From assembly GCA_964247055.1 (NCBI GenBank), contig OZ176053.1, forward strand, positions 1,364,001-1,428,000: a stretch of DNA of 64,000 nucleotides. Direction: 5' to 3'. The DNA is from Paragordius varius. Its lineage: Eukaryota; Animalia; Nematomorpha. This document shows positions 1,885-63,343 of the stretch, in pieces; position 1 is the stretch's first letter; every line of letters begins with the position of its first letter. The notes beneath the pieces were generated by a model. The model was not told the origin of the DNA, searched no databases, and saw nothing but the letters and a program-made list of their open reading frames with translations. The translations under genes were made by a program, and so were the position numbers.

Positions 1885-4800
1885 TTAACGAGGTGGTGGT
1901 GGTCGAGGACCGGGCGGGATGGGTGGAGCGTTAGCGCGCGGAGGACCGGGTGGGCGAGCTGCCATTCCCGGAGGAGGGGGAGGAGGAGGGCCTGGTCTAG
2001 CGCCCATCCCTGGAGGGCCAGGAGGAGGAGGACCCGGTGGTCTAGCTGCCATGCCTGGCGGTGGGGGAGGGGGAGGAGGAGGTCCTCGCATGGGACTCGC
2101 TGCTCCCGGTGCTCTTGGAGGCCCAGGTGGAGGCATGGGAGGAGCGCCGCGAGGTGTTCCGCCTCCTGGGGGAAGCATGCCTGGGGGGCCTGGTCGAGGA
2201 CTGCCCATAGCGCCTGGTGGAGGGCCCGGCATTCTCATTCCTGGTGGGGGAGCAGCGCCCGGAGGCATGGGAGGAGGGGGAGGAGCCCTTGGCGACAATC
2301 CTGAGGGGCGAGGCGGCGGAGCTCCTCCAGGTGGAGGAGGGCCAGCTCTCGGCGATGCTTGAGCGCCAGGCGGCGGAGGGACAGGAGGAGGAGCTCGAGG
2401 CGAGGCCCCAGCCGGACGAGGAGGTTGCATTCCAACTCCGGGTGGAGGAGGTGGAGCTCTTGGGGATGAAGGCGCCCCTACTGGCATTCCAGGTCCAGCA
2501 CCAGCTGGTGGTGGTGGAACAGGTGGTTTCTCTGTCACTGGCGGAACTGTTGCTGGTTTATCATCTGGTTTAGTAGTTTCAGGTTTGATACCTATAAATC
2601 AAATGATATCTTATAATTTAAAATATTAATTACACCCTAAGAGTTTTCCTGAATATTTTGTCAATCGATGTTGAACGTGTTTTAGGTACTTTTTAATTTG
2701 GTTCATTTAATCGAAAAACCATTATTTAAAAGCCTATAATCTCTTTAAATGTTTATTAAGTAATTCATACTACGCTCCGGATGTTCAGTACTTCCTAAAT
2801 TTATCTAAATCAATAAATTGGGGTTATATGTAAAAGAATAAACAAAAATTTAAATGAGCTAGAGGCCTAGTCTGTGTATTTTGGCTATAATTTATAAAAA
2901 ACATGGTGGAGATAGGATTAAATAAATATTTTAAAATATTTATACGTATCGCAAAACGGTCAATAAACAAATATTTTTAAATGTTCGTGTTTCATGCGAA
3001 CACCTAAGGATACATATAAAATATATAAGTTCGGATTTTTAACAAAATTTAACCATTTCTAAAAATAATCCAATTTAATTTGACATACCGATGCCAATAT
3101 ATAATTAAAAAAACTTCAATTATATATTTGTTTGCTATTTTATTATATTTGGCATTTACATTTTCTTCGATGCCATTTAAACCTCAATTTTGGGTTTGAA
3201 AGTCCATCAGTACTCTATCGAAATAATTACATTAATCTAAAATCATAATATTTGACAACCTTGATTTAGTATAAATCATGTAAAATTGAAAAGTTGGTTC
3301 TTTTTAGAATGGTATATAGTTTAATTTACTTTGATTTATAAACATTAAATGATATGTATTACATTTTGCCAAAAGTTACTTAAAACACGTCTAACATAAA
3401 ATTTTTATCCTCACACGTTGATGCCGCTAAAGTTACGAACAAAAAATTAACAAAACAGATATTTAATAATGTCGATTAAAATTATGTATCGATGATAGTT
3501 AGCGTATACTTATAATTTTTAATTGTAAGCAATTCTTTGAGTATGTCTTGAATGTATTTATGCATTGTAACAATATATTTACCTTCAGCATCTTTTTTGG
3601 GAGAGGAGTCTTTTTTATCATCGGCAGATTTTTCTTTGTCGTCCTTCTTTTTCTCGTCCTTTCCTGCGTAAAGGGAAATCAAAAAAGCATAAAATTTTTC
3701 AGATTGTTTTTTAACATAGAAGTAAAAATCGGCATATAAAAAACATAAAACTACACGTTTTAAAAAACCAAACCTTCATCTTTCTTTTTATCTTTGGGTT
3801 CTTCCTTTTCTGCCTTTTTCTTTTTGGATTTAGAAGAAGATTTGTCATCCGCTTCAGTAGTACTTCCCTCATCGTCATCTCCTGAAGTGTCTTCCCCACC
3901 CGTTTCTGTTCCGCCCGACGATTTCTCCGAAGACGATTCCGATTCAGAACCGGCTTTTTTCTTTTTATCTAACAACATCCAATAGAGCAAATTGTGTTAT
4001 AAATAAAATTATATATCCACAAAAACAAAAATTATCATTTAGCAAGAACCTTTTTTCTTGGTATCTTTTGTTTTTTTGGCTGCGGCAGCTGCTTTTTCTT
4101 TTTTCTTATCGGGTTTGACTGTTTTGGCAGGAGTAGATTTCGATTTTGCTTCGGCTGCTTGCTTTGGTGCTGCGGGACTTTTAACTTGGCTCTATATCAA
4201 ACATTATTCATTATTTTTTTATAATTAATTAATTTGTTAAACAGCTTCATAATATGGCAAATTAGATAATTATGTGAGTAGATGAATATATATAATATAA
4301 TTTATCAATTACTCTGTATTAATTAATGAGCTTACTTTTTTGGTAGTTGGGACGGCACTTCTCAGCTTCTCTAGCTCTGGGCTAGGAATGGCATTGATAG
4401 TTGCCTCAATTAAATTTACATCTATAGAAATATTGCACATATTAAACCCAAACTCGATTTTTATATGAATATAAAATAAATTCGGGTAAACCGATACACA
4501 ACCTTGAACAGTCTCTTTAAGTTTTTCAACGCACTCTTGAATCGCTATAACGAAATTCATAACCTCGTCACAAACTGCTCCCTCCATATTCTCATTCGTG
4601 TTAACATTTAAATTTCCTGGTCCACTAAACGATTGCAATGTGCCAGAAGAGGGAAACAATTGTTTTAACATTGATTGACGCATTCTAGGATCGGGCTGGC
4701 TTTGCAACTAGACGTTTCCGTAAAAATATTTAAAACTACAGTAAAAATTGAAATTACACCGACAAAACATAAAAATTTAAAGACAAATATTTTTTTCTAA

Positions 4801-22439: not shown

Positions 22440-23200
22440 CTGGGAAAATCCTTGATGTTGCGAAAATTTGGTGGTACATGTAAAAGGGGCCAAAGAAGGA
22501 TAAGGTGGGTGGGTATTAATCAAGAAACCCATGCATCCTCGGTACTCAACATTAAAACTAAAAATCGCAATCTAAGGAGAAATTAAATAAAAATGCACCA
22601 AGTCGACCTCAACTGTAGCAAAACACACACAAAGCTTTTTGTACAATATTTGAATATAATGTCTGATAATTATACTTTATAGAAACCGAAAAGTATTCTC
22701 AAAACAACACGAATGGCTCATGTGCCTCATTTTTACCGCCGTAAAATAAATGGGCTGTACAAAGATTTTATAGATGTTAATTGATATATTTAATTTAAAA
22801 CTAAAAACAACGGAAATCCTAATAACTTTACTACTTATTTTTGTTTATTACTTACTAAAAATTCTAATCAGGTTAAAAATAATATTCGAAAAACAACAAT
22901 TTTTTCCATTAATCTTTCTTCAAAAACGATCTGAGTTAAATGGGTACGGATATTAAAATATATCTTTTTCCAAAACATATAAAAGCTAAGTATTTAACCT
23001 TTAGTAATCAGCTAAATAGTTCTCATTACTGATCAATGTAGAACACAGAGATATACTATACAATGGTAATGGAAATTACGATTTATAGTTAATAATTACA
23101 CAAATCTATGATGTTTTGAAAACATTAATTTGTGATATGCATGTGCGTATACGTCTAAGAAATTTATCCAAAAAACGGTGGTCTGAAGAAAGGAAATCCG
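22440..23200 (+). repeat. ~725-bp tandem duplication unit: RTE 3' fragment, spacer and end of the peptide gene
   Basis: 22476-23200 is colinear with 23201-23890 and 28385-29050; shared blocks include gtaaaagggrcc.aagaagga, aagtcgacctc.actgt, aaacaacacgaatgg and aaaacgatct.agtt. Confidence 0.85.
23164..23200 (-). pseudogene. Truncated copy of the FGPR peptide gene (last 11 codons and stop)
   Basis: Minus strand reads GGA TTT CCT TTC TTC AGA CCA CCG TTT TTT GGA TAA = GFPFFRPPFFG*, fused directly to the start of the next duplication unit. Confidence 0.8.
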
Positions 23201-23847
23201 ACATGTAAAAGGGACCGAAGAAGGACAAGGTGGGTGGGCAATATCCTACAAGAAACCCATGCATCCTTGGCAGCACTCAACATAACTAAGTTTTATAAAT
23301 ATTGCAAAAAGTCGACCTCAACTGTACAAAAACACAGACACACACAAAGCTTTTTGTACAATATTTGAATAATGTCTGATAATTATACTTTATCCAAAGT
23401 TCCCGAAAATTAAACTTCAAACAACACGAATGGGTTATGTGCCTCATTTTTACCGCCGTAAAATAGGTAGGCTGTGCAAAGATATTCAATTAATTTAAAA
23501 CTAAAAAACAACATAAATCCTAATAAGTTTACGACTTATTCTGGTTTATTACTTATTAAAATTTCTAATCCGGCTTAAAAATAATAATCGCAAAAATAAC
23601 ATGTTTTCCATAAATCTTTCTTCAAAAACGATCTAAGTTGGATTGGAATGGATATAGGAATATATCTTTTTCCAAAACATAAAAGCTAAGTACTTACACG
23701 ACTATAAGTAGAACACAGGAATAGTGTATACAATGTTAATGAGAATTACGATTTATTGTTAAAAATTACACAAATAGAGTTAAATATACTTTAAAAACAT
23801 TAATTTAAATGTGTGAGTATGCATGTGTGGGTATACATATAACAAAT

Positions 23848-24355
23848 TTATCCAAAAAACGGTGGTCTGAAGAATGGAAATCCGCCGAATCCAGGAAAAC
23901 CGAAACCGGGAAAGCCAAAGCCTGGGAAACCGGGTCTGAAACCAAATCCGGGAAATCCGCCAAAACCGGGTCTAAATGGAAACCGTCCTGGCAAAAATCG
24001 AGCTTCACTTTGAGAATCCAACAGTATCGTAGCAATAACCTATATGCATTCAGTTAAAAGTAAAAAAATATATGCGAGATACAGTAGGCTAAATATCTTA
24101 AAAATACAGTTATTTTTTAAATATAAATCATTATTGGTTAGGCTGCAAAAGTATTATAAAAGGTAAATAGTTTATATAGTTAGGATGTTGTGTTTGTCAA
24201 AAAAATCCCGGTTTAAAAGTGCATATGGTTGCATTTTAGAAAAAATATTTGACTTTTAATTTTTACCATTTGTCTGTATTTTAATTTTAGAGAAATAAAA
24301 AATAATATGATTTTACCAATAAGGCGAGAATATTGAAGATTTGAGATGATGCCAT
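23848..24355 (-). CDS. Secreted Phe/Gly/Pro/Arg-rich peptide precursor, copy 1 (76 aa)
   Basis: Exon 1 24355-24317 (MASSQIFNILALL), phase-0 GT-AG intron 24316-24040, exon 2 24039-23848 (VIATILLDSQSEA-RFLPGRFPFRPGFGGFPGFGFRPGFPGFGFPGFGFPGFGGFPFFRPPFFG*). Confidence 0.88.
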
Positions 24356-24453
24356 GGTATGATTTGCACTGGGAGGAAGTTTAGGAGTTAATAATAGAAA
24401 TTATTGGAATAATTGATGTAAAATATGTATGAATAATGTTGAAAAGTATCGGC

Positions 24454-24461
24454 TATTTATA
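24454..24461 (-). promoter_or_regulatory. Putative TATA box of peptide gene copy 1
   Basis: TATAAATA in context ggTATAAATAgcc, about 100 nt upstream of the ATG; conserved at 29625-29632 and 34849-34856. Confidence 0.6.
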
Positions 24462-26028
24462 CCTTTTTTGTAATACCTATATCAATCACAAAAACCCTCT
24501 TATGTAATAAAAAATATGGTTTAATTGATACGATTATATAATCGTATTACATAGTTTCTCTAACATTAATCCACAATCAATTACACTTATAATTTACATT
24601 TTGTTTTTTTCTATTATTAAAAAGTTTGTTGTCCACTCGTATAGGGACATGTTAGGATTAGTTCAAGAATATACAGTAATTTATTAATCTTGTGAGTGTA
24701 TTTCTAGCTAATTTACCTCACTAAAACTTGATGGGTTTTAGGGTTAGCCAATATCGATATTTTAATAAGTTAACCTTAATTAGCTATATGTAATTAATCA
24801 ATCACTGTCCACAGTGTATTGCGATTTAACAGCCAAATTAAATTGGGAAATAGTTTAAAAAAATCTTTTAAGGACTCTACAAAATATCATTTATTTTGAA
24901 ACCAACCCTGAGAGCTTTAAAATTATTAGCAAAAGATATTAATTTGTAATATAATTAACCTTGTATATCTGGTATAATAATAGTTCCAAATTAATGCTAT
25001 ATTATGTAATACGTTTATCGGCCAATAAAATAATGTTGGTTTAAATTTTCCTATAAATTTCGTTTATTCAATAAAATTAATTTTTTATTACCGACTTTCA
25101 GTCTAATCTAAAAACGATTTGGAGATATTACACCAAGTCAAATGTTTAATGTAGATTACTATTGACGAGCTCTTTCGCAAATTAATAATGTTTCTTTTTT
25201 TAATGGCATTATATCAGTGAATTTTATAAGGAATAAAATTAAAATAGTTATAGAATTTTTTAATTATACTTTATCCATTTTTCATAAGTAAAGTGTATAG
25301 TTGGACGTTATGATATGCAAACAGTATTGATAATATCTAGTTACTTTATGTTATAAGGCTCTGAGATTGTATAATCTCATCAAAATTTAGCTCAAAGAGC
25401 AGCAATTTAAAACTACTTCAATCTTTTGAATATTAACCATATTTAGCGATTCTACAAGCCAGGCTAGGTTGTCCAACACAAATAGAACTGCGGGTTAATC
25501 TTTTAAGTTCTTTTTTCAACTCCTATCGTAAAAAATAAATATGTTATGAGATATTGTATTCTACACAAATTAATTTTTCTAATTCCAAATGAAAAATAGT
25601 GAATTGGTTTTATATTAAATGAAATCGCTTTAATATATTTTTATCCTCTTTTGCTAAAGATTATGTTTAACGAATGGCATTATGATCAAAAGCGCGATTC
25701 TTCAACACAAATGGTCTGACGGGCTGCATTCGAAGTTAGATTTTAAACATAAAACGGTATAAAAAAAATTAAGAAGATAATATCATTACTAAATATTTAT
25801 TTTGCTAGTTTTTGGGAGAAATTTGAAAAGAGTCAAAGAGTTTTTCTTCGAAATATTAATTAAATTAAAATTTTGTAAATATTTTTGAATATAATGGAAT
25901 CTAGGAGGTTATATTAGGTAATTGTTCAAATAGTTTGTTGTGAGCACCAATTGGACACCATTTAAAGTAAAGTTTTTTACTGACCACTAATATACGGAAT
26001 TACACGGGCATAATCAGTCATTTATGCA

Positions 26029-26032
<4 letters not shown>

Positions 26033-26063
<31 letters not shown>
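26033..26063. repeat. (TA)n microsatellite
   Basis: Direct reading. Similar tracts at about 27127-27148, 30297-30323, 58857-58925 and 61296-61330. Confidence 0.9.
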
Positions 26064-26068
<5 letters not shown>

Positions 26069-26287
26069 GTAAAAAAACGAAATTCCCCCCTTTTAAAAAA
26101 CTCCACAAAAATTGTGTTGATAAAATTTTAGGAATACGTTCCCTCCCAATCAAAAGCAGTAATAAAGCATGTTTTTATGTGCCGAATATAGTACCTTTTT
26201 AACACTATTTAGTCCTTCCTCCCGTTTAATTTGAAAAAATAGGCATTTGAATAAATTTGATAGCTATCATTTGAGCTAGTTATGAGA

Positions 26288-26520
26288 CTATACAAAATCA
26301 TTAGTGGTATAAAGTTGTTGTTGCCAAGGTCGATTCCGACCAACTGCAACATTGAAAATATAACTTTTCCATTCATTACGAATACAAGATGTGGTGTTTA
26401 GTTTGGATACGATTTGTTGGGTTTCTTTGAGGATTTTATTGATCCAACGAGTTCTTCTTCTCCCTCTTTTACGAGCACCACTCACTTTTTCCAGCATCAA
26501 TGTGACTTTTGAAGTGAGTT
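26288..26520 (-). mobile_element. RTE-clade LINE 3' end fragment
   Basis: MLEKVSGARKRGRRRTRWINKILKET...RNEWKSYIFNVAVGRNRP matches the RTE/BovB C-terminus (MLGKIEGRRRRGRQRMRWLDGI...REAWRAAVHGVAKSRTRL). Confidence 0.8.
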
Positions 26521-27839
26521 AGATCTCATAATGTGGCCGAAATAGGATAGTTTTTGTCGTATTAGGCTGCCCAGTAGTTACAGTTTCGGATTAATTCTTT
26601 TATAAAATAATCCCAGTATAGGTAGTAATATTCTTTTATTTATATTAACCTTTGAATTAAAAGACAAACAAATTTAATGAGGCTATTTTAAGTAAACCTG
26701 TAAGGACGGCCATCCTCTATATAAAATACACCTATCATATAAAAATAACTTTGCTGATACATTTGAATAAGCTATGAGGCCATCAAAATCAATTATGTTT
26801 TATTTTGCTAAAAATAAAAAAAATAATCCAGAGATTTTTTATATTTAGCTGCTATGCTAATTTACTCCCTCTAAAATACGCCAACATGGACAATACGTCA
26901 AAGCTTATTTTTAAAAAACCTACGAGATCGTATAGATTCAATCATGATTTTAGGTTTTTCCGAATTATGATAAAATTTAACCTCCGGTTAGGGCCTCTCC
27001 CTATGTTAAACACACCCTCATCCATGAATAATGCGGCTTCCAACCAACTTATTAAAAAACCTATGATAACTTTAATATATGTCACCATTTAATTTTTTCT
27101 CGTTCATAGCGATTTAAAATAAAATTATATATATATATATATATATATGCATAGTGTTCCCTTAGTAACAACTTTCCGGAAAACTTGTAATTAAGTAAAT
27201 GTTTATTTCTATTCGGGCTTTTCTTTGAATTGGCTGCTGAGTGTGACGGCTAACATACGTTTTTTGCAAAAAAAAGTAATTCACTAAAAATATTTGTTTA
27301 ACTAATTTATTAAGAAGAGAATATGAAGTAAAGTCATTATATATTTATCTAATGAAAATTATAATTAGACTCATCAGCCCTTTTTTATTATTCTTTTAAA
27401 AGAGCACCACCCACCCAAAATATGCGCTTATTTTCACAATATCGAGTCTATTGAGCATTATTCGAAGGAAGTTATAGTTCCATTCAAAATTCAATTATAT
27501 AGCTTTATACATTTCTTTAAATTAATCTATTCTGGTGAAACTATTGTAATAAGCGTCTGATTCCGAACCCTTAAAATACCACGGTAGCAAATTTATAACC
27601 ATTATTTGTCGCAAGTTACTCTCATAGTAGAAAAAACCGTAGAAGTCTTATATATTATATTGTCCATGTTGAGATATGAGTATTCATCAATACGTCATCA
27701 ATATAATTTAAGTTGGGAGATTATTAAATTTATTATAGATTGTTTACTAGCAACGAATGGAAAAAGCACAGTTGGTAAAAAAAATTTGTTATCTTTTTCA
27801 TTTGTCCCAATTTAGCAAAAAAATTTTAATTATATTTGG

Positions 27840-28530
27840 ACAGCAAGATGTTATTATTCAAAAATAATTTGCCAATTGTAAAATAAAAATACTATTTACT
27901 ATGCAGACGATACGGTTATCTTCACAGACAATCCAAAGTTATTAACTCTCATATTACAACATTTTGGAAATGAATGTTAAAAATATGGGCTACACATTAA
28001 TCTATCGAATACAAAGATAATAAAAATTAACCTGAAAGTTCCACATATCTCGGGAGCTTAATATACCTGATGATAATTGGACTCTCGAGATAAATAGAGG
28101 ATAGCTATGGCCAAAACGGCCACAAATAATTATTGAGCATCCCATGGTGTCAGTTTAAAAACAAAAATTTGACTTACAAATGCAATATTACCCAACCTTT
28201 ACAAGTGTGAAATTTGGACCTAAAAAAATCCGTCCTACCAATAATAAATTCCTTTGAACTCTGGATATGGAAAAAATTTCCCGAGTCATTGCATGGAATG
28301 TCCATCCTCACCAAACTATCCTACTTTGGCACATTAAGAAATCTAACACTGGAAAAATCTTGGATGTTGGAAAAAGTTAGTGATACACGTAAAAGGGGCC
28401 GAAGAAGGACAAGCTGGATGGACAATATTCTACAAGAACCCATGCATCCTTGGCAGAACTCAACATTAAAACTAAATATAAATCTATGGAGAAGTTTTAT
28501 AAATAATAAAAGTCGACCTCGACCGTAAAA
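27840..28530 (+). mobile_element. Degenerate RTE-clade LINE (RT YADD motif to C-terminus)
   Basis: YADDTVIFTDN at 27900-27932, then WTLKK/FELWIWKK, LSYFG, LEKSWMLEKVSDTRKRGRRRTSWMDNI; frameshifted. Confidence 0.85.
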
Positions 28531-29011
28531 CAAACGCACAAAGCTTTTTGTACAATATAATTCTTCAAACAACACGAATGGGTTATGTGCCTCAATTTTA
28601 CCCGCCGTGATATAGGTGGGCGGTGCAAATCTATTATAGAAGCCAATGATTTAACTAATTTAAACTTAAAACAACGTATATTTAAATGACTTTACCACTT
28701 ATTCTGGTTTATTACTTATTAAAATTTCTAATCAGTTTTAAAATAATATTTGAAAAATAAAAAATTTTCCATTAATTTTTTTACAAAAACGATCTGAGTT
28801 GGATAGGTATGGATATAAAAATACATCTTTTTCCAAAACATAAAAGCTAAGTACACACACCTTGAATAATTAGAATATCAGATTGACTATAAGAACACAG
28901 AAATAGTGAATTCAATATATATGGATTTTACGATTTATTGTTAAAAATTACACAAATAGAGTTAAATATGCTTTAAAAACAATGCATCTGTGTGTGTGTC
29001 TTGTAAATAAT

Positions 29012-29530
29012 TTATCCAAAAAACGGTGGTCTGAAGAATGGAAATCCGCCGAATCCAGGAAATCCAAAACCGGGAAAGCCAAAGCCTGGGAAACCGGGTC
29101 TGAAACCAAATCCGGGGAATCCGCCAAAACCGGGTCTAAATGGAAATCGTCCTGGTAAAAATCGAGCTTCACCTTGAGAAACCAACAGTATCGTTGCAAT
29201 AACCTATATTAAGAGAATAAAAATTTATATGAGATACTTTGCATTAAATATTGAAACAAAAACATAAAGTCAAAACTATTGAAACGATTCTTAAAAATAG
29301 ATTATTTTTTTTAAACCATTGGTTTGGGGCGAAATAAGTATTATAAAAGGTAAATTATTTATACTGTAAGAAAAACCCAAGGTTTAAAAGAGTATGGTTG
29401 CATTTTAAAAAAAAATTTAACGTTTAATTTACCATTTGCTTGTATTTATATTTTGATTATATATATAAATATAGAAATAATATAAGATTACTAATAAGGC
29501 TAAAAGATTAAAGTTTTGAGTAAATGCCAT
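29012..29530 (-). CDS. Secreted Phe/Gly/Pro/Arg-rich peptide precursor, copy 2 (76 aa)
   Basis: Exon 1 29530-29492 (MAFTQNFNLLALL), intron 29491-29204, exon 2 29203-29012 (VIATILLVSQGEA plus a 50-aa mature peptide identical to copy 1). Confidence 0.88.
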
Positions 29531-31049
29531 GATATGTGATTTGCACTGAGATCGGGATTTTAAAAGAAATAGTTGGAATAATTGATGTAAAAAATTTATG
29601 AATAAATATGTTAAAAATATGGGCTATTTATACCTTTTTTGTAATACCTATATCAATCGCAAAACCCTCTCAAGTAATAAAAAATATGGTTTAATTGATA
29701 CTGATTATATAATTGTATTACATAGTATCTCTAAAATCAAACAATTAATCCACAATCAATTACACTTATATTTATTTTGTTTTTTTCTTATTATAGGGTT
29801 CGTTATTTGTACATTGAAATATTGTGATTGGTTCAAGATAGATAAGTAATTTATTAATCTTGTTTTGAGTATGTTTCTAGCAAATTTTCTACAATAAAAC
29901 CTATTAGATTTGTTAATAAATTTAGATATATGTAATCACTGTCCGCGAATAGTAGGACTTACTTAAAGTATAAATAAATAGATGAAAGATATTTTAATGC
30001 TTTATTGAAGGTATAAATGTATTGTTTAATTTTTTTAGAAATTTAACTATTAAATATGCTGCAATATTAAATTACATAAAAAGGACACGTGAATCCGCTT
30101 CAAAATAAAAGAGTTTAGACATATTCTTAATAATATTTCGTTCAAATTCACCCTTAAACAATTGAAAATCGCCCTAAAAATAAATTATGCATTTTTAAGA
30201 TTAAAAACTACCTATATTTATTAATATTTTTTTATAAGAATTACGTTTAAATTTTATATATTAATGAAAAATTAATGCTATGTATGAAGATATACATATA
30301 TATATATATGTATATATATATATGATGAGTTATGATAGCCCGAAAACACATAATTTATTTTTAGGGTTAATTTGAATGTAAATGGTACATATATAATCTG
30401 TACATTTTTTTTAATTGGGTAGCAATTTTATTAAATCTTTATTGCGACATGTACAAACTAATATAAAATCTGAACCGAAAATGAATTATAATGTAAACTG
30501 GTTTTACTGCTCAACTTGAGGTTCTTTGAGAAGAGTTTGAAAACGTATATATCTTTTGATTTGGAAAACTTCAAATCTTTAGGTTTAGAACAAGGGTTGT
30601 CAAGACGAATGACTGCCATGCTCCCTTGATTATTGCATTCTTTTTCTTATTTAGTTAACTCAATTTGTAATTTGGGGGAATAGCAAAATTAAAAATCAAA
30701 ATTCATTCGTTTTTTATAATTCATCGAAAAAATTTTGCAAACACCACAAAAAAATATTGAAAAAGGATATCCCTTGTTATCCGCTTTGTTTTACAATGAA
30801 ACATATCTTAATTTTATTGTTTATTCTCTAAAATTAAAAGTTTTATAATTTCATGTGATAAACAGTGTTAGTGGTTTAATAATGAAGCAATATTTAATAA
30901 GTAAAGTATTTTCCATTTTAGAATATCATTTTACTCAATAGTTAGGTTTGATTATCGGTCTGAATGCTTATTAATGCAGTTAACAGTCGTTAACAGCTAT
31001 TTATTATCATAAATACCTATCTTTTAATAAATGTTGTGGGGTTAAACCG

Positions 31050-31390
31050 GCTGAAAAATGAGTCTGATATCTAGCTTAGTCGTGGGATTTTAAAAAATTT
31101 GTCTCAAAACCACCATTCGATGGTGGAGCATTATTTCAAGACATGGGCCCAATTAAGGGGTATTAAAAACCGCTCAATTTTTTGTGTTTTTGTGGGTAAT
31201 ATTTCAGGCCCTTATTAAACTTATATAGTCGAGGTCTAAAATTTGCCTCCGAATCGATATAAATATGCAGTAGGCTAGTAGCCCCCTTTCCAGAGGCCAA
31301 TTAGAAGTCGTTCAATAAATTTTTTGCCTTTATAGAGGAAAACCTGGAATCATCATTCATTCCTTATGTTCTTACTCCGGTTTTCCGGCA
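31050..31390 (-). repeat. Short block of the ~160-bp satellite family
   Basis: Contains aaatttttttgcctttatagaggaaaacctggaatcatcattcattcc and gggtaatatttcaggcccttattaaact, as in the 32390-34060 array. Confidence 0.65.
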
Positions 31391-32389
31391 ACAGATCACA
31401 GAGCCAGCGTTTATTTTTATAATTATATAGATTATAATATAATATATAAAAAAATATAAAACGTGTCCATGTTTATGTGGGTTTTTTTCTTATTTTCTTA
31501 CGTGGAATGGTAAATATATCTTAAAACATTATGTTAATTTTAGGCTAAGGTTTTTAATATTTTAATGGATAAAACAACCCTTAAAAATAACCCGTCGGAT
31601 AATTTGTCGGCTTGTGCTATGATGGATGTTGGGGTAAAGGTGTGCCCCGTATTTTTGGAGGAAACATTACAGATTATCATGTTGCTTGATCAAGGTGACA
31701 AAAGGCATTGGATCACCGATTAAATTAAAGCCAGGAAAAAAATGTATATGCCTTAATTACAACAATACATCTAAAAAATTAATATTTGCAAAAAGTACAG
31801 GGCAGGCTTTCGCCCCTTATCCATTATAGCACGAGTTTACAATTTATTCGACAGGTTAGAGGCTTGTTTCCATTCAAATGGTAAAAATCTTATAAAGAGA
31901 AGAGAAGAAAGAATTAAATGTGACCAAAACATTCCTAAAAAATAGATTATTTCAAGATATTTATAATTCCAGTTAGAAAATTCATGGACATTAACATATT
32001 TTATATTTTTTCATCATAATTTACACTAGCCCTGTGACGCTTCACTGTGACGTAGTCTCACCAATTATTTTTAATAATTTGCTAAATATAGAAGTAATGG
32101 AGATAAAAAAATAATAAAAAACATATTTAATAAAAAGAATGTTTTTAATTAATATTATTTTACGGGTTTTTGCCTAAAATATTGACTCGATATTGACCAT
32201 ATTAAAACTGTCCCTTATTAAATTTGATATTCAACTATTATTCAGATTTTACCTCGTTTACGAAATCATGGTCAAAAGTGTTATTTTGAAAATGTGTCCA
32301 CTCAACTCGGATTAAAGGATATAAAAAGTAAATTATTTGTGGTTTTTTTTAAAGGAAAGAATGATATTATACCAATTCCCTAGAAATGT

Positions 32390-34060
32390 GTTTAACTGAA
32401 CTCGTATGGCTTCTTATGTTTTTTGAAAATCAGCCCCAAAACCACGCCATTTTTGTATGGCGTCTCAGTTTTAAACCGGTAGACCCCTACCCGTAGACCT
32501 AAATGGAAAAAGCGCTGAGTTATTTTTTGCCTTTATAAGGCAAATATTTGGAATCATCTTTGATACCATCGTCTCATGGGTTATTCAAAATATACCTTAA
32601 CACTAAAAAATCATAATTAGGGCAGGGCTAAAATTAACGGCTAATAAGAAAACGCCTAACCTTTTCACCTTGTTACGGCCAATACAATTTAATGAGCTCA
32701 TATGGCTTCATTCTGTAAATTAGCTTCAAAACTACGCAATTACTGGCGCAGTTTTGGGCGGGCAGCTCCTTATCCAAGGGCAGGTATGAACAGCGTTGGG
32801 CAAAATGTTTGCCTTTATATAGGGATTATCTGAAATTATCATGGATTCCATACGCTCCTATCAGTATAGGTTTTCTTAAATTTGGCTCCAAAGACATGGC
32901 GTATCGATATGGTGACGCAGTTTTAGGCGGATAGTCCCCTAACCAGAGGCGTAACAAAAAAAACGCTTGATTACAATATTTCTGCCTTAATTCGGGTAAT
33001 ACCTGGAATCATGATTGATTCCATATCGTAAGATTTTCGAAAAATTGCCTCAAAACCAAAATATAGTTCTATGTGTAGCATTAGGGAAAGGGACTAATTA
33101 AGAGAATAAATAAAACCGCTCTACATAAATTTTTGCCTTTTACCGGTTATATTTCCACCCTTTATTGAACTTATAAGACCCAATATGTTTTCTAAAATTT
33201 GCCTCCAAAGTCTTGCTATATCGATGTAATGTCTTAGTTGTTGGATGGTAGCCCCCATCCAGAGGCCAATATATAAGAGACGTTCGATAAAATTTTTGCC
33301 TTTACAGGTAATGGCATCATCATACATCCCATATGTTCCTAATAGTGTTGGAAGAATGGCTTCAATAATTGAAAGTAGTTCAATGATAGCGCATTTTTCA
33401 GGGCGTAAAGAGCCCAATTAACGGCTAATTTAAATAAACTTCTTGACTTAAATTTTTGCCTTTTTAAGGGTAATATTTCACCATTATTAAACTCAGGCGT
33501 GAGAAGTTTTCTGGGAATTAACTCCTTAACAATGCAATTTCGATAACGCAGTTTTGGGCGGGTAGTTACCTACCAGAGGCTAATACAAAAAAGGGCTTGA
33601 TTAAATTTTTTGCTTTTTTACAGAGAAAACTTGGAAAAATTGCCTCTAATCTAATAAATCATTCAATAGTGGCGAATGTTTCAGGGCGTGAAGGGACCTA
33701 AAAATGCAAATTTAAAAAAACTGAAGAACTAAATTTTTGTCTTGTTAGGGGTAAATTTTAATCATCTATTGAACTCATATGACCTGATAAGTTTTTTGAA
33801 AGTCAGCCCCAAAGGGACGCTATTTCGATAGGACGGGGCAGTTTTTAGCTTCTCTTAGCAGCCAAAATAAAAGCACGACTATATTTTTTGCCTTTTATTA
33901 GGGAATACCTAAAATCCTCGTTGAATTGGGTCTCATACACTGGGCGAAACATTGATGAAAAAAATTATTTTTGTGGACTTAATTTTTTTGAAAAAATGGC
34001 ATTTTACGGAAGGAGCGGGTAAAAAGAGGGCCTAATTTTAAAATCCGGGCCTATGTTCTC
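32390..34060 (-). repeat. Degenerate tandem array, ~160-bp monomer, inverted relative to 45560-47330
   Basis: Recurring aaatttttgcctt motif; 33970-34040 is the reverse complement of 45565-45625, and 32390-32700 of about 46970-47260. Confidence 0.8.
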
Positions 34061-34409
34061 TCAAGTATAATTTCTTTTAGGGTGAATTAATATTGTTGAA
34101 GGATGATTTGAAGTGTAAATGCTACACTTTGTTTTTATCATAAACCGCTATTTCAAATCTCCAAATTATAAGCTTTTAAATATATCTTTTTTGTCCACCA
34201 TATATGGAACTACGATCGTCATATTTAAATAATAAACTAACCTACAATATCTTAACTTTAAAAAAAGACATTATGATAACAAATATATATTATATATGGG
34301 CTTTACGATTTATTGTTAAAAATTACACAAATATAGTAGATAATAATATGCTTGGAAACATAGAAAAATTGTGGTGTGCATGTGTGCATATGTATGTCTT
34401 GTAACAAAT

Positions 34410-34743
34410 TTATCCAAAAAACGGTGGTCTAAAAAATGGAAATCCGCCGATTCCGGGAAAACCGAAGCCAGGACCCCCAAAACCGGGAAAGCCAAAGCCT
34501 GGGAAACCGGGTCTGAAACCAAATCCGGGAAATCCGCCAAAACCGGGTCTAAATGGAAACCGTCCTGGTAAAAATCGAGCTTCACCTTGAGAAACCAAGC
34601 ATATCGTTGCAATAACCTATATATCAATTTAAGAGATAAAAATAAGAAATCATAGATATTAATACATTCGTAAAATCAATATTAAATTAAAATATAAAAA
34701 TTACCAATAGGGCGAGAATATTAAAGAATTGAGAAGATGCCAT
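34410..34743 (-). CDS. Secreted Phe/Gly/Pro/Arg-rich peptide precursor, copy 3 (81 aa)
   Basis: Exon 1 34743-34705 (MASSQFFNILALL), 88-nt intron, exon 2 34616-34410 (VIATICLVSQGEA-RFLPGRFPFRPGFGGFPGFGFRPGFPGFGFPGFGGPGFGFPGIGGFPFFRPPFFG*); one extra 15-nt repeat unit. Confidence 0.88.
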
Positions 34744-35749
34744 GATAATATAAGATTTGCACTGATAAAGTTTGAAGGTAATAAATACGGATGAAATAAA
34801 TTTAAAGATGAAAAAAATTTATAAGTAAAAACAATGTAAAAAGTCGGCTATTTATACTTTTTTTTCTTTGCAAAGTTGTATTATATATGAAATACCCTTT
34901 ATATATAATTTTTATAATTGATATTTGTTATCATTAATCGCATAATATTATATTTTTCTTAGAATTTATAAAACCATTGCCTACTTTAATCAATTACATT
35001 TCAATACTCATACTTACATTTTTTATAAGACTGTTGTCTCCTAGAAATAAATTTCCAAGAATTTTTTATTATGACATTTTGTGCGGGGTAAAAAAAACTT
35101 TTATTAAAACAACTTGTAAATCAATTATCCCCATTTAAAGCTTATTGTTTTGTGTAGCGACTTTACTAATAAAATAATAATATTATAAATATATTATTAT
35201 AAAAAGTTAAAATTAAGTTAATGAATTTTGGGTATAGATTATAGAGATGAGTTAAAAAAATAGGTCCTATAGGGGTAAGTTCTAATAAAATTTAGAATGT
35301 CCATAAAAATCAAATTCTATGATATTCTTCTACTTTCATTGTATTTCATATTTTTGTTGAATATCAATATATCAGCTGGTTTAAATTTGAAATTATTAAT
35401 CTTAATCAATAGCAAGTATATTTTTACAGCAAAACAATAAATATTATGCCGAAAAATTCGTGAATGCTTCACAAACTGGGCATAACATAAGTCGTAAGTT
35501 ATATAACTCATTTTATATATATATAAATAACTACAGTTACCAACTCAATAATACTACCTCTATTTCACTATTTTTTTACTTGGGTTTTGTATAAATATAT
35601 AGAATGTCCTAACATGTTCGTTATCGTTTAAGTTTAAACTGCATGAAAAACAAGTTTCAATAGGAATTTTGAACTGCGAAAATATTTCATAACATTATAT
35701 TCTATAAACATTGTTTAAGGCTTCTGTTTAATATATTTTTTCCGTTTAG

Positions 35750-38700
35750 AAATATCAATTATACGATCCTTTATTAATGGTGCTTTTATATGATCCTATT
35801 ATGTATAGTGGTAAGAAAGTAGTTGAATGAAAAATCAAATGTAATAAAATCTATTTGTAAACAAATAAAATAAGATTAATTTCTAATTTCGGAAATAATT
35901 TATAGCGGTATAATTTTAGGCCATTTTAAAAATTTCACGGTGATCTAACCCAAAGCTTCAATACTTGAATTTATAATAAAAATTTGAATGTGATACTTGA
36001 TTAAATTAAACTTACAATTTTAAACATTATCGCAAAATATAGTTTTCATTTTAATTCATATTTTTTATTGAAATTTAATAAATATAGCCTAAACCACCAT
36101 TCTAAATAGTATTATAATGCTTTAATTATGCCCATGAGAAGGGTTATTCTATTGATAGATGCGGTATAATTACAAAACCATTTTAATTAATATAGTTTTT
36201 TTGTATTAAATATAGCGTATTATCATTGAGGTACAAAATCGTTTGTCGTTTTAGGCGCCTCCTTTATATTTTGTCTGAAATTTAGATAAGTCCGTCCTCC
36301 TACTCCTTTGCCTAAGCGCCATTAACTAAGATTTCAATTTTAAATATTAATGCTTATACCTAAATGAATATTTCTATTATGGGCTAGTAATTATATCAAT
36401 ATTTCATTATTTTCAACATTGACTTTAGTAGAACAAAAAATTTACCAAACATTCATGGAAATTTATTTCACAAATAAGAGTCATATTAAAAAAAGAGACA
36501 TTGTATTTTCGGAACCCATTAAGAGATCAAACTATATGTACGTATATTGAATTTAAAGCCAAAAAATTAAGCCAGCCATGTGACTTCAATGAACAATGCC
36601 AAGCTTTTAATAAAGATACTATTTGCGATTGGAAGATTGGTAATTTATGCGCTTGTTCAGACAACTTTTACATTAAACAAGAACCAAATGAAAGCACATC
36701 CCAGTGTGTTAAAAGTATTTTTTTCTCTTACCAAAAAAAATATATGCTAAAATTATTTTTTAGCGATACTTAATCTTTTATGTGATCATTATTCACCATT
36801 AGAATTGCTTCTAGAGACTAAATGTGATATAAATCAAAATTGTCAATCCGGTGTTTGCGACAATACACTCAAAACATGTCAATGCCCTGATTTTACTTAT
36901 CCAATTTCTGATGAATGTGTTTCAAGTACACCAATTTTTACCCCCAAAATAAATTGATATCAAATTTATATAAATATATAATTATACAGTTTAGAGTCTC
37001 TTTTTCTTTTTTTATTAGGGTAAGGACTTAAAATATATCTGATCTTGTGAGGCTTTAACACTCGCCTGCCTGCCCAGGGCTGACAGTTATGATTAAGGTG
37101 ACCAGACGTCCCGCTTTTGGCGGGACAGTCCCGCTTTTTCTCACTTTGTCCCGCGTCCCGCTACGTTTTTAAATGTCCCGCTTTTTCAAGATTATATAAA
37201 AAATAATTTTTTTTAATACATTTAAATTTTTTATTAAAAATTTATTTTTTTTATTCGTTTAAATTTTTTATCATTAGTTATCTTTAAAATCTATATCAAT
37301 TTTAAATAACAATTTTTTATTATTTTTTTCAAATTTATATCATGTGATTATACACTTTGCTTCCTACTCTTACTACCAACATTATCAAAAAGACTAATTA
37401 ATACCACAAATCGGTAGCTTATATAACTTCATAAAATTAAGGTAGTAAAATATATTTTTATACTAATATTTTAGTTATATTACCTGCCAATCTTATCAAA
37501 AAGACAAATTAATACCAAAAATCGGTAGCTTATACGTTTATTCCAGAAAACTACGGTTATATTTTTTAAACTAATATTAGTAAAAAAATATGAGTACAAA
37601 AACAGGTTACTAATTCAACAATGAATTAATCAAAGAATTTTCTTTAACGAAAATGAATCATTTATTAAATGTTCTTTATGCGAGGGGGAATTCACCCTAG
37701 CACATGGCGGCAAGCGTGATATTACAAAGCATATGAAAACATAGAAACCTAAAAATTGTTTAGATGTGGCATCATCATCATCTTACAAAATGAGTGATTT
37801 TTATCGAAAAACCGCTTTTGGAGATGAAGAAAAAAATTTGGCACTAGCCGAAGGCGTTTTATCTTTTCACGTGGTTAATCACAACCATTCCTTTAGTTCT
37901 ATGGATTGTACCTCACAGATTATTCGTACCTTATTCAATAAAAAATTTACATGTGCCCGTACAAAGGCTGAAGTCATTGTATGCAATGTCCTTTAGCCAC
38001 ATGCATTTTCTGAAATATAAAAGATTTGCTAATTAATTTCATATCGCTATACTCTGCTGCATCAAATCACATGGAAACAAAATTATTTCCCACTTTAATA
38101 AGATATTTTTATCCAGAAACCGGAGTAAAAATTAAATTTAGTTCTATTTCCCTCGGTGAAAATTCCGACATAATTTTTACTTCAATAATGAATATTCTAG
38201 AAAAAAATAATTTAAAAAACAAAATCATCGCATATTGCGCTGACGACACCAATACGAACTTAGGTGGAAAAGCAAGGAGGGAAACAAAAAATATTTTTTA
38301 ATAAATTAGCAGATAATTTTAATCAAAACTTTATTGGCGCTGGGTGTGATATTACACAATGCTATTCAAACAGCTGCTGATTTGATATTTCTAGATATGG
38401 AAAATGTAGTTGTTAAAATACATTCCTATTTTTATATATATACGGTACGCGTTGAAACGCTTAAGGGAATTCTGTGAAAATGCAGAAGTTTATTATCAAA
38501 AAATGCTTGGATATTGTAAAACTCGTTGGTTAGTTCTTCTGCCAGCTATTGAGAAAAATTTTAAAAATATGATCCTTTAAAATCCTATTTTTTATCACAG
38601 GACGAATCTCCTACAACTTTCGAAAAGTTTTTTGAAAGTGATTCTTCAAAAATATAGTTATTCCTACATAATCAAGCTTCTCTCTTTCAAAATGTTATTC

Positions 38701-45205: not shown

Positions 45206-47566
45206 CAGTAAAAACTGATAATATACGAAAAAAACGTAATAATATAAAGACAAATAATCTATATATTTATGAAAATGGAAAGCGGTGGCTTTGTGATCTG
45301 TTTCCGGAAAAGTAGACTCATTCAAATCCAAATATCGAAAAAATATAATCCTTAATGAATGCCCAGACAATAGCTTCGCCCTTTTTTGAATTAGGTCCCC
45401 AGTTTGGGCCCACCCCGTGTACAAAACGGTTTTTTTTGAAAACACAAGTCCACAAAAATCATATCTTTGAGACAATTTTCCGGAAAACGGTTGGACCATT
45501 CGATTTCAAATATGATTTTTTTAACTTATTTTCGTTTGCGCCGAACATGGTCGGCTCGCTTTTTTAATTTAGGCCCTCTTTTTACCCGCTCCCCCCGTAA
45601 AATGCCATTTTAAGTCCACAAAAATATTTTTAACCTATTTTCACCCAAAGTATAAGACCGTAAAAATACAATAAAGATTCCAGGTATCTGCTAAAAGGCA
45701 AAAATTTTAGTCAAGAGTTTTTTTTGATGATAGTTGCTGGGTAAGGAAATATCCGCTAAAAACTGACTCGTCATAAACCGTGCTTTGGGGCTAAATTTCA
45801 GAAAACCCAGGCCATATGAGTTCAATCCGTGCTTAAAATATTACCTGTAAAAAGTCAAAAATTAGAGTCGGGCGGATTTTTTAAGCGATTAAATAGGCCC
45901 TCTACGCCCTGAGAAATGCGCCACCATAGAATAATTTTTTAATTTTGAGGCAATTTTTCCGAAAACTAATGAGAGCATATGGAATCAATCATGATTCCAG
46001 GTATTCTCCGTAAAAAGGCAAAAAATTTAATCAAGCGCTTTTTTGTATTAGCCTCTGGGTAGGGAGCTGCCCGCCTACAACGGCGCCACCATATCAAAAT
46101 TGCGTTGTTTAGGAGTTAATCTTCAGAAAACTTATGAGACTATGTGAGTTCAATAAGGGCCTAAAACATTACCCGTAAAAAGGCAAAAATTTAAGTCGAG
46201 CGGTTTTAAATTAGCGGTTAGATAGGCCCATTACACCCTAAAAAATGCGCTATCATTGTACTAATTTTTTAGTTTTGAAGCCAATCTGTCATAACTAATA
46301 AGAACATATGGAATGAATGATGATTCCCGGTATTCTTATATAAAGGCAAAAAAATTTATCGAACGTTTTTTTATTTTGGCTCCTGGGCAGGGATCTACCC
46401 GCCAAAAACTGTGCCACCATATCAAAATTGCGTTGTTTAGGAGTTTTTTTCAAAAGTTTTATAAGGGCCAGAAATATTACGCGTAAAAAGGCAAAAATTT
46501 AAGTCGAGCGGATTTTTTAAATTAGCGGTTAAATAGGCTCTAGGTAAGGGCTACCCGTGTAAAAATGCGTCACTATATCGATACAGCATGTCTTTGGAGT
46601 TAAATTTCAAAAAAAACTTATGAGACTATGTGAGTTCAATAAGGGCCTAAAATATTTATTACCTCTCAAAAAACAATTTTAGTATAGGGGGTTATTTTAA
46701 TAAATTGCTAAGAAAAGTTTTACGTCCTGGAAAATTCGCCGCCATAGAACAATTTTTGGTTTTGAAGCAAAATTTCCAAGAACTTATAGAAACATATGGA
46801 CATTATAATTTCAGATATTCACCATATAAAGACAAAAATTTTGCTCGACGCTTTTTTATACCTGCCTTTGGGTAATAATCTACCAGCCAAAAACTGTGCA
46901 ACTAATTAGAAATTGCGTTGTTTTGGAACTAATTTAAAACTTATGCCATATGAGTTCATTAAAAGCTTGTATTACCCGTAACTAGGTAAAAATTAGGGTC
47001 GGGCCTTTTTTATTAGCCTTTAAATTGAGGCCTTTATGCCCTATGCCATCATTTATGATTATTTAGTGTTGAAATATTTTTTGAATAACCCATGAGACGA
47101 CGGTCTCAAAGATGATTCCAAATTTCCCTATAAAAGCTAGCGCTTTTTCCATATAGGCCTATAAGTAGGACTCTACCGGTTTAAAACTGAGACGCCATAC
47201 AAAATTGGCGTGGCTTTGGAGATAATTTTCAAAAAACTTAAGAAGCCATACGAGTTCAATAAAGGCTTTAAATATCACCCATAAAAAAGTAAAAAATTAT
47301 AGTATAGCGGTTTTCCCGTTAGCCGTAATTCTAAAAGACAACCATACTTTTTAAACTTTAATTTTTCCCACATAAATGATTTATTTCAATAATAAAATAT
47401 ATAATTGATTGTATTACTAATATACATCTCTATTCCATACTTTGCAATTTTTAACAATTATTTAAATTTTAAATCAAGATTTAAAAAATATGGTTGTTGT
47501 CTTTTAGAAAAAAATATTTGTCTTTATATTTTTACGTTTTTTCCATATACAATTTCAATTTTTACT
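45206..47566. mobile_element. CAGT-TIR MITE split by a ~2.07-kb insertion
   Basis: The left TIR start (ta|cagtaaaaactg...aaagacaaata) is at 45206-45255; its continuation (ctaaaagacaaccatac) resumes at about 47331; the right TIR ends tttttactg|ta at 47566. Confidence 0.7.
45560..47330 (+). repeat. Tandem array, ~160-165-bp monomer with alternating dimer structure
   Basis: The aaaaggcaaaaattt motif recurs at about 45695, 45853, 46013, 46178, 46343, 46487, 46830, 46985 and 47285; alternate units share either ggaatc.atgattcc or gagttcaataagggcc. A fragment of its end also occurs at 22250-22330. Confidence 0.8.
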
Positions 47567-62714: not shown

Positions 62715-63343
62715 ATGGTGCTATTGTTCATGATAATCAAATCAAATGTAAGATTAAAGATTATAGATATAAGGGGCTAGATATTGCACGAATAAATATA
62801 TCATATCAAATATAATTATGTTACAATGTTAATTTGTATCTACAGAATCGCAACGACTTTTCGATAGGTTGGCCAATCTTATTTTGTTTTTGGCATTTAT
62901 AAACGGGCTAGTTTTTTTAAACAATATTAAACCATCTAAACGAAAAAACACACACACTCTAAATCCTATCATTATATCTGTCGGATTATTTCCCATATAA
63001 GTAAATTAATTAACATGCAAGTAATAATAGTTATATAATCCAACTGTAGAATGCAATCCACTCTTTATGACTTAATATTTAGGGGTACATAGTGTGGGGG
63101 TGCATATAAAAATAATCCGAAAACGCTCAATAATCTAGACTAGATCAATATTAGAAATACTGACCATTAATCCCATATTCTTATGCGTTATCCAAAAAAT
63201 GGCTGTAAGATAAATTTGGGGGCTTTGTCACTAAAATTTGCAATAACTTCAAAATGGCATGACAAGATAGGCACATTCATAAAGCAAAATAAATGTTTTA
63301 TTGAAATAAAATTAGTTTTCTTGCAAAAACTATATATTCTGGT

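Follow-up and report, generated by a model that had tools for sequence, protein, structure and literature searches.

What is made from three short, Phe-rich reading frames that lack a start codon and lie a few kilobases apart on one strand of a horsehair worm genome? The frames belong to a 64,000-nucleotide stretch of the Paragordius varius assembly (contig OZ176053.1, positions 1,364,001 to 1,428,000), here called the window. Each of them appears to be the second exon of a small gene on the minus strand (c1, c2 and c3) that would encode a signal-like leader followed by a peptide composed almost entirely of Phe, Gly, Pro and Arg. Two matters have to be settled in turn, namely whether these are genes at all and what kind of product they would deliver. 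Unprefixed coordinates are positions within the window, and those of all family features are collected in Table 1.

Gene models, family members and selection

The three copies were read from the sequence with the same layout, consisting of a TATA box, an ATG with its 13-codon exon, GTAA, an intron, exon 2 and AATAAA. The ATG lies about 95 nt downstream of the TATA box and the AATAAA about 90 nt past the stop codon. The introns of c1, c2 and c3 (277, 288 and 88 nt) are of the GT-AG type, in phase 0, and end in ATATAG. They are positioned inside the leader of 26 amino acids. The first exon contributes 39 nt of coding sequence (13 codons from the ATG). Exon 2 keeps its frame for 63, 63 and 68 codons and stops right after ...FFG, giving total precursor lengths of 76, 76 and 81 codons. 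Neighbouring copies are spaced by 5.16-5.40 kb.

A first-pass annotation, made from the letters of the window alone, had proposed three intact two-exon genes on the minus strand with the intron in the leader and the junctions 24317/24039, 29492/29203 and 34705/34616. We recomputed junctions, intron phase and translations by script; they agree with the reading, and the proposed coordinates, counts and junctions (GT-AG, phase 0, frame) hold at the level of the sequence. Because the intron splits the signal peptide, the sole long open reading frame (ORF) of each gene has no ATG. The ORF list indeed holds just the ATG-less exon-2 frames of c1-c3, and its blindness to the copies had been pointed out in the same annotation. 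The three copies are thus an example of genes that standard annotation misses.

Exactly six loci were returned when the 110-Mb assembly of the worm itself was searched with exon 2 and subsequently with a six-member profile; they are c1-c3 in the window and c4, c5 and c6 outside it. All six follow a common plan in which the TATA box is followed by a first exon with the ATG (8-13 codons), a phase-0 GT-AG intron, a Phe-rich peptide, a terminal Gly and AATAAA. Their introns measure 68-288 nt and each one lies within the hydrophobic leader. The precursors of c4-c6 range from 57 codons (c6: 8 + 49) to 78 codons (c4).

The flanks of c4-c6 were scanned for further Phe/Gly/Pro-rich frames, which brought up c7, a gene that has a hydrophobic leader of its own, a body rich in Gly and Phe, and PNFG before the stop. 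It has no paralogue in the genome search and no database match in the word-index search, and it aligns with the family profile over just 13 columns. Across the genome, c1-c3 and c7 alone have the codon pattern for GFGGFP, and the control has no occurrence. By these signs c7 is probably a distant relative. The family has at least six genes, plus this distant seventh; the tandem cluster of three that had been described is present and intact, but it is part of a wider family. A pattern for PFFG-stop was tried as a route to more members and abandoned, as it gave 91 matches against 38 in the control and none of the first 30 translated was family-like. Its match at window 63188-63202 looks like chance.

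Comparison of the copies argues that the reading frames are used. Among c1-c4, identity is 92-97% in exon 2 and 59-77%, with many gaps, in the introns. In the mature part the ratio of nonsynonymous to synonymous divergence (dN/dS) is 0-0.07 at a dS of 0.14-0.32, and c1 and c2 encode identical 50-residue peptides in spite of five synonymous differences. Third codon positions hold 9 of the 11 variable sites in the mature part (binomial P = 0.0014). Two indels among the copies, of 15 nt and 9 nt, remove whole codons and keep the frame. For the leader, dN/dS is 0.05-0.64 when the codons from exon 1 and those from the start of exon 2 (13 each) are pooled for counting substitutions, indicating faster evolution than in the mature part, as in signal peptides.

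The TATA box, a block of the 5' untranslated region and the AATAAA are also conserved while the introns drift. The TATA box lies in the 13-mer GGTATAAATAGCC, of which the 110-Mb genome has five exact copies, three of them at c1, c2 and c5. As the 13-mer is kept at c5, whose flanks otherwise no longer align, the promoter is conserved as well. The two other exact sites were considered as family members and rejected. One is a chance site; the other, in G000:C1:4316001-4317400 (minus strand), is upstream of an ORF resembling a multi-pass membrane protein of the seven-transmembrane (7TM) kind.

With the low dN/dS, third-position bias and whole-codon indels among c1-c4, the family members c1-c6 are very probably real coding genes, and the pattern of substitutions indicates that the peptide sequence is preserved by selection. 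The multiple copies noted in the first-pass annotation are accordingly under strong purifying selection. The contrary explanation, that these are chance ORFs or decaying duplicates of low-complexity sequence, could draw on the truncation of one further copy, on the lack of homologues in database searches and on three small sequencing runs, guessed to be RNA, that gave no reads from the locus. It has to account, however, for a dN/dS of 0-0.07 at an appreciable dS, for substitutions biased to third positions and indels in frame, and for six loci in which ATG, GT-AG, TATA and AATAAA are kept while introns and flanks have diverged past alignment. We give it a minimal chance and regard non-functionality as nearly excluded.

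Properties of the peptide and its possible functions

The leader of c1-c3 has a short polar start and a hydrophobic core of 15 residues and ends in EA. The residues at -3 and -1 are small (S or G, and A) and are followed by Arg. By the hydrophobic core and a manual check of the -3/-1 rule it is compatible with a signal peptide, in line with the leader of 26 amino acids that had been proposed. The mature parts have 50, 50 and 55 amino acids, within the range of 50-55 that was also proposed. A script count of the c1 peptide returned the composition already given for it, with 18 Phe, 15 Gly, 11 Pro, 5 Arg and 1 Leu, no acidic residue and FFG before the stop. Its net charge is +5, its isoelectric point 12 and its calculated mass 5485 Da, which amidation would lower by 58 Da to about 5.43 kDa. 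The comparison with cationic peptides made in the first-pass annotation suits c1 but does not extend to all members, as c6 has a net charge of 0.

The mature part is 30-33% Gly, 33-36% Phe (17-18 residues) and 21-23% Pro. Member by member, Gly makes up 30% in c1 and c2, 33% in c3, 31% in c4, 29% in c6 and 14.6% in c5. About six units of the XPGFG type are found in mature c1-c3, three of them consecutive FPGFG, and there is no Lys and no Ala in these 50-55 residues. In c5 the pentamers are lost and both termini are kept. The C-terminal GFP-F...PFF-G is the best-conserved block, and the last codon before the stop is Gly in all six members and in c7. Three of the five Arg residues have Pro next. 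The peptides of c1-c4 contain no KR, RR or KK, and each internal Arg precedes Phe or Pro. Exon 2 has a G+C content of 48%, compared with about 27% for the window, which comes from a very AT-rich genome; the published value for the hairworm Gordionus montsenyensis is 26.93%. AlphaFold2, run on the exon-2 alignment, predicted coil and no fold (mean confidence, pLDDT, 53), with only the leader helical.

The first-pass annotation did not recognise a named family, and neither did our searches. The searches took each exon separately. No Pfam domain was found above the cut-off; Pericardin_rpt and Keratin_2_head matched below threshold only (about 10 bits, where 24-28 are needed). Word-index searches with c1, c7 and c5 were blank, the six-member profile had no match at E <= 0.001 among 1.84 billion representative proteins, and ESM Atlas returned nothing usable. 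In a literature search for the motif, FPGFG appeared only as an isolated unit in papers related to tropoelastin, and no family made of it was found. Such blanks are weak evidence because gene calling in any assembly is likely to pass over an ATG-less exon of 57 codons, and bias filters penalise low complexity. They fit an orphan family without proving one, and genomes of relatives lay outside the searches. We found no publication on the immunity, surface chemistry or adhesive materials of Nematomorpha, and two hairworm genome papers do not mention glycine-rich or antimicrobial peptides.

A C-terminal Gly can serve as the substrate for amidation, as the first-pass annotation had stressed. Exons of the copper monooxygenase family are present in the genome. 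The exon at G000:C4:12375554-12375715 has its best PDB matches in peptidylglycine alpha-amidating monooxygenase (PAM/PHM; E = 1e-9) and belongs to a PHM-like copper type II monooxygenase gene at G000:C4:12375554-12376655 (plus strand). A second such gene, at G000:C4:4195718-4196653 (minus strand), has dopamine beta-hydroxylase as its best match. Since a PHM-like gene is present, conversion of the terminal Gly into an amide is feasible.

The same observations raise the idea that the genes encode a signalling peptide or hormone in precursor form, with the conserved ...PFF-amide as its active end. The Gly before the stop is invariant in the six members and c7, the C-terminal block is the most conserved one, and, as in amidated neuropeptide precursors, a C-terminal Gly that could serve as amide donor is found together with a PHM-like enzyme gene in the same genome. 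However, those precursors have dibasic or monobasic convertase sites, and c1-c4 have neither these nor other convertase sites, their internal Arg always standing before Phe or Pro. The product would then be a low-complexity peptide of 50 amino acids, an unusual form for a neuropeptide. That three to four nearly identical genes were kept in tandem suggests bulk production, and the terminal Gly is less telling than usual because Gly makes up 30% of the peptide. We consider a signalling role to have a slim chance.

Our tentative preference, held at somewhat below an even chance, is for an abundant epidermal or secretory host-defence or surface peptide. The leader would be removed upon secretion and a PHM-type enzyme would turn the terminal Gly into an amide. 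The resulting product would be a disordered, protease-resistant peptide of about 5.4 kDa with a charge of +5. It would act on microbial or other surfaces through its charge and Phe-driven self-association, with no folded domain, and would correspond, on the hairworm side and in composition only, to the nematode peptides NLP-24 to NLP-34 and CNC. Its size, the +5 charge, the lack of acidic residues, the Arg-Pro bonds, the amidation signal, the TATA promoters and the tandem copies fit such a role. Small cationic, C-terminally amidated peptides rich in Pro, Arg and Phe (Bac5, PR-39, prophenin) are antimicrobial, as are Gly-rich amidated peptides of arthropods, and antimicrobial peptide genes are often found in tandem clusters with strong TATA promoters.

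Like Bac5, PR-39 and prophenin, the peptides are linear and cationic, contain neither Cys nor acidic residues, have much Pro, Arg and Phe, fall within 40-80 amino acids and would be amidated via Gly; they begin with Arg-Phe, as Bac5 does. Those three, however, are cathelicidins of vertebrates, which carry a cathelin prodomain, have little Gly and contain much more Arg and Pro. In the hairworm genes a cathelin-like prodomain is not present; the peptide directly follows the leader with no Pfam domain, and Gly and Phe dominate.

Another comparison is with the glycine-rich secreted peptides (GRSPs) of nematodes, namely NLP-24 to NLP-34, the CNC peptides or caenacins, and FIP/FIPR. Nematoda is the phylum usually placed beside Nematomorpha. 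The GRSP precursors are likewise shorter than 100 amino acids, with a Gly/aromatic-rich and mostly cationic peptide directly after the leader, and their short genes lie in tandem clusters. They differ in that their aromatic residue is Tyr or Trp where it is Phe here, and the peptides described here are 22% Pro with elastin-type XPGFG units, have no detectable sequence similarity to GRSPs and are strongly conserved in the mature part, not diversified. GRSPs have been defined by a length of <=200 amino acids, a signal peptide and a mature Gly content >17%; antibacterial and antifungal activity has been reported for those of C. elegans, and the class is compositional with an uncertain common origin (PMC10506718). 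The hairworm precursors are well within this length (76, 76 and 81 codons for c1-c3, 57-78 for the others), and the Gly content of c1-c4 (30-33%) and c6 (29%) is above the threshold, with c5 at 14.6% below it. A BLAST top-five match to a C. elegans GRSP, also used in that study (PMC10506718), has no counterpart here, as the profile and word-index searches were blank. By the operational, compositional definition c1-c4 and c6 would qualify as GRSPs, the signal peptide being judged manually.

Several points weigh against a defence or surface peptide. With c6 neutral and c5 at just 14.6% Gly, cationic charge and Gly-richness are no invariants of the family. The nearly frozen mature peptide would fit a material or a specific ligand better; antimicrobial peptide clusters, for example that of nlp-29 in C. 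elegans, tend to diversify. At about 35% Phe the product may be too insoluble as a free peptide. The profile and word-index searches detected no similarity to GRSPs or antimicrobial peptides, and the locus had no reads in the three small runs guessed to be RNA, the runs that do cover it being DNA-type and from one study.

The main rival, which we consider possible though rather doubtful, is a self-assembling (coacervating) extracellular material or adhesive. The Xaa-Pro-Gly-Phe-Gly pentamers would act as a short, very hydrophobic elastin-like peptide that undergoes phase separation after secretion via Phe-Phe and Arg-Phe contacts. The result would be a coat, glue or matrix in the cuticle surface, in egg-string or cyst material or in male adhesive structures. 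The synthetic peptides (FPGVG)5, with 25 residues, and (FPGV)4 coacervate reversibly; (VPGVG)n needs >40 repeats (PMC9653453). Several features of the family suggest such a material: the run of about six units with three consecutive FPGFG in mature c1-c3, the 15-nt and 9-nt indels, which amount to whole motif units gained or lost, and a sequence nearly frozen by selection with several old copies kept, as for a bulk product. The neutral c6 and its neighbour c7 retain the Gly/Phe character without the charge, AlphaFold2 predicts no fold, and about 35% Phe suggests strong self-association. On the other hand, c5 has no pentamers yet keeps both termini, and the peptide has only 50 amino acids, none of them Lys, Tyr, Cys or Gln as used in covalent cross-links, which makes a durable elastomer like elastin or resilin unlikely.

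The likeness to elastin and elastin-like peptides consists of the tandem Xaa-Pro-Gly-Xaa-Gly pentamers with hydrophobic Xaa, which are found in c1-c3; human tropoelastin contains FPGFG itself. It ends there, as the peptides have about six units in 50 amino acids, no Lys/Ala cross-linking domains and no large polymer, and they are cationic with conserved ends outside the repeats. No homology is implied. Mussel foot protein 3, a small, cationic adhesive rich in Gly, aromatic residues and Arg, coacervates and is similar to the peptides in size and charge. Together with abductin and the 'glycine loops' of keratin and loricrin it also resembles them as a low-complexity sequence of Gly and aromatic residues that works by cohesion, whereas the hairworm peptides are without Tyr/DOPA, Met or cross-linking chemistry. 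The weak sub-threshold Pfam matches mentioned above were to keratin and pericardin models. A more specific proposal is that of natural short elastin-like coacervating peptides, in which a secreted, amidated, Phe-based (XPGFG)n module would phase-separate unaided to form a protective or adhesive coat on egg strings, the larval cyst, the cuticle surface or male adhesive structures; we hold this to be unlikely.

A host-directed effector is also conceivable. The parasitic juvenile would secrete it into the haemocoel of the insect, where it might coat the worm or disturb encapsulation. The predicted secretion and the Arg-Pro bonds, which would resist trypsin-like proteases, are compatible with this, but no similarity to any known effector was found and we regard it as improbable.

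History and surroundings of the locus

The first-pass annotation had described a dosage-amplified effector. Sequence is shared around each gene over about 1.5 kb between c1 and c2 and about 0.5 kb between c3 and the others, and the remainder of each interval between copies is unrelated sequence and repeats. Because dS is 0.14-0.32 and the duplicated stretch is only about 0.5-1.5 kb per gene, this is not a recent dosage burst. Judged by this divergence, c1-c3 are old retained duplicates.

The window also has a truncated fourth copy, of which only the 3' flank remains together with the final 12 codons and the stop (23200-23164). Directly next to it, at about 23201-23290, is a transposon-like fragment. 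The left end of the span drawn in the first-pass annotation (23164-23200) is the end of this copy.

Table 1. Coordinates of the family members and their features in the window and elsewhere in the genome
Feature	Position	Strand	Remark
c1 TATA box, GTATAAATAGCC	24451..24462	-	about 95 nt upstream of ATG
c1 exon 1 coding part	24317..24355	-	ATG + 12 codons, first half of signal-like leader
c1 intron	24040..24316	-	277 nt, GT...AG, phase 0; far less conserved than exons
c1 exon 2 coding part + stop	23848..24039	-	13 leader codons, then 50-aa peptide
c1 mature part	23851-24000	-
c1 AATAAA	23752..23757	-	within block conserved in c1-c3
c2 TATA box, GTATAAATAGCC	29622..29633	-
c2 exon 1 coding part	29492..29530	-
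c2 intron	29204..29491	-	288 nt, GT...AG, phase 0
c2 exon 2 coding part + stop	29012..29203	-	mature 50-mer protein identical to c1, 5 synonymous differences
c2 AATAAA	28934..28939	-
c3 TATA box, GTATAAATAGCC	34846..34857	-
c3 exon 1 coding part	34705..34743	-
c3 intron	34617..34704	-	88 nt, GT...AG, phase 0
c3 exon 2 coding part + stop	34410..34616	-	mature part 55 aa, one additional five-codon unit
c3 AATAAA	34309..34314	-
Truncated fourth copy	22476..23200	-	22476-23200 matches 23201-23884 at 75%
c4	G000:C4:84221-84415	+	same contig as window, 1.3 Mb off
c5	G000:C4:89006-89161	+	same contig as window, 1.3 Mb off
c6	G000:C5:10800425-10800568	+	other contig
c7	G000:C5:10800985-10801239	+	single exon, 85 codons, 0.4 kb downstream of c6

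A very high-copy element is represented by fragments at 23201-23290, 26288-26522 and 28214-28575. Its ORFs bear an RKRGRRRT-W-(D/N)-ILQE-like motif, and in a DNA run it reaches a contig depth as high as about 300 times the baseline around it. The pieces at 26.3-26.5 kb and 28.2-28.6 kb have opposite orientations. A repeat family of about 1 kb is present as inverted copies at 32397-34051 and 45553-47258 (65-77% identity); inside it, tandem pieces are found at 32.9-33.8 kb, between c2 and c3.

Among the neighbours, a Cys-rich ORF at 36501-36773 (plus strand), 1.7 kb past the c3 promoter, has a weak match to the EB module (E = 0.004). Exons of an RNA cytosine methyltransferase of the NOL1/NOP2/Sun type, with a weak Methyltr_RsmB-F match, are located at 53898-54194 and 56053-56343 (minus strand). 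Neither of these neighbours gives a hint on the function of the peptide. At 1885-2538 (minus strand) there is an open frame of 217 codons made of nearly all Pro/Gly/Ala runs, which resembles the poly-proline of formin FH1 or WASP-type proteins and lies inside a local G+C island (39% compared with 27%).

Meaning of the family

A small secreted peptide rich in glycine and aromatic residues is a known kind, and the family opens no new category of biology. What is new, as far as the predicted peptides go, is the Phe basis together with the elastin-type pentamers. The peptide is short enough for synthesis, and antimicrobial action and coacervation driven by temperature or salt are directly testable. 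Biomaterials researchers would take an interest in a natural peptide that combines elastin-type pentamers with about 35% Phe; if the coacervation reading is true, nature would have come to the design of the synthetic (FPGVG)n, in a non-cross-linked form of 5 kDa. Provided that the genes are expressed, the family would be the first of such secreted peptides to be described in a horsehair-worm-type genome.

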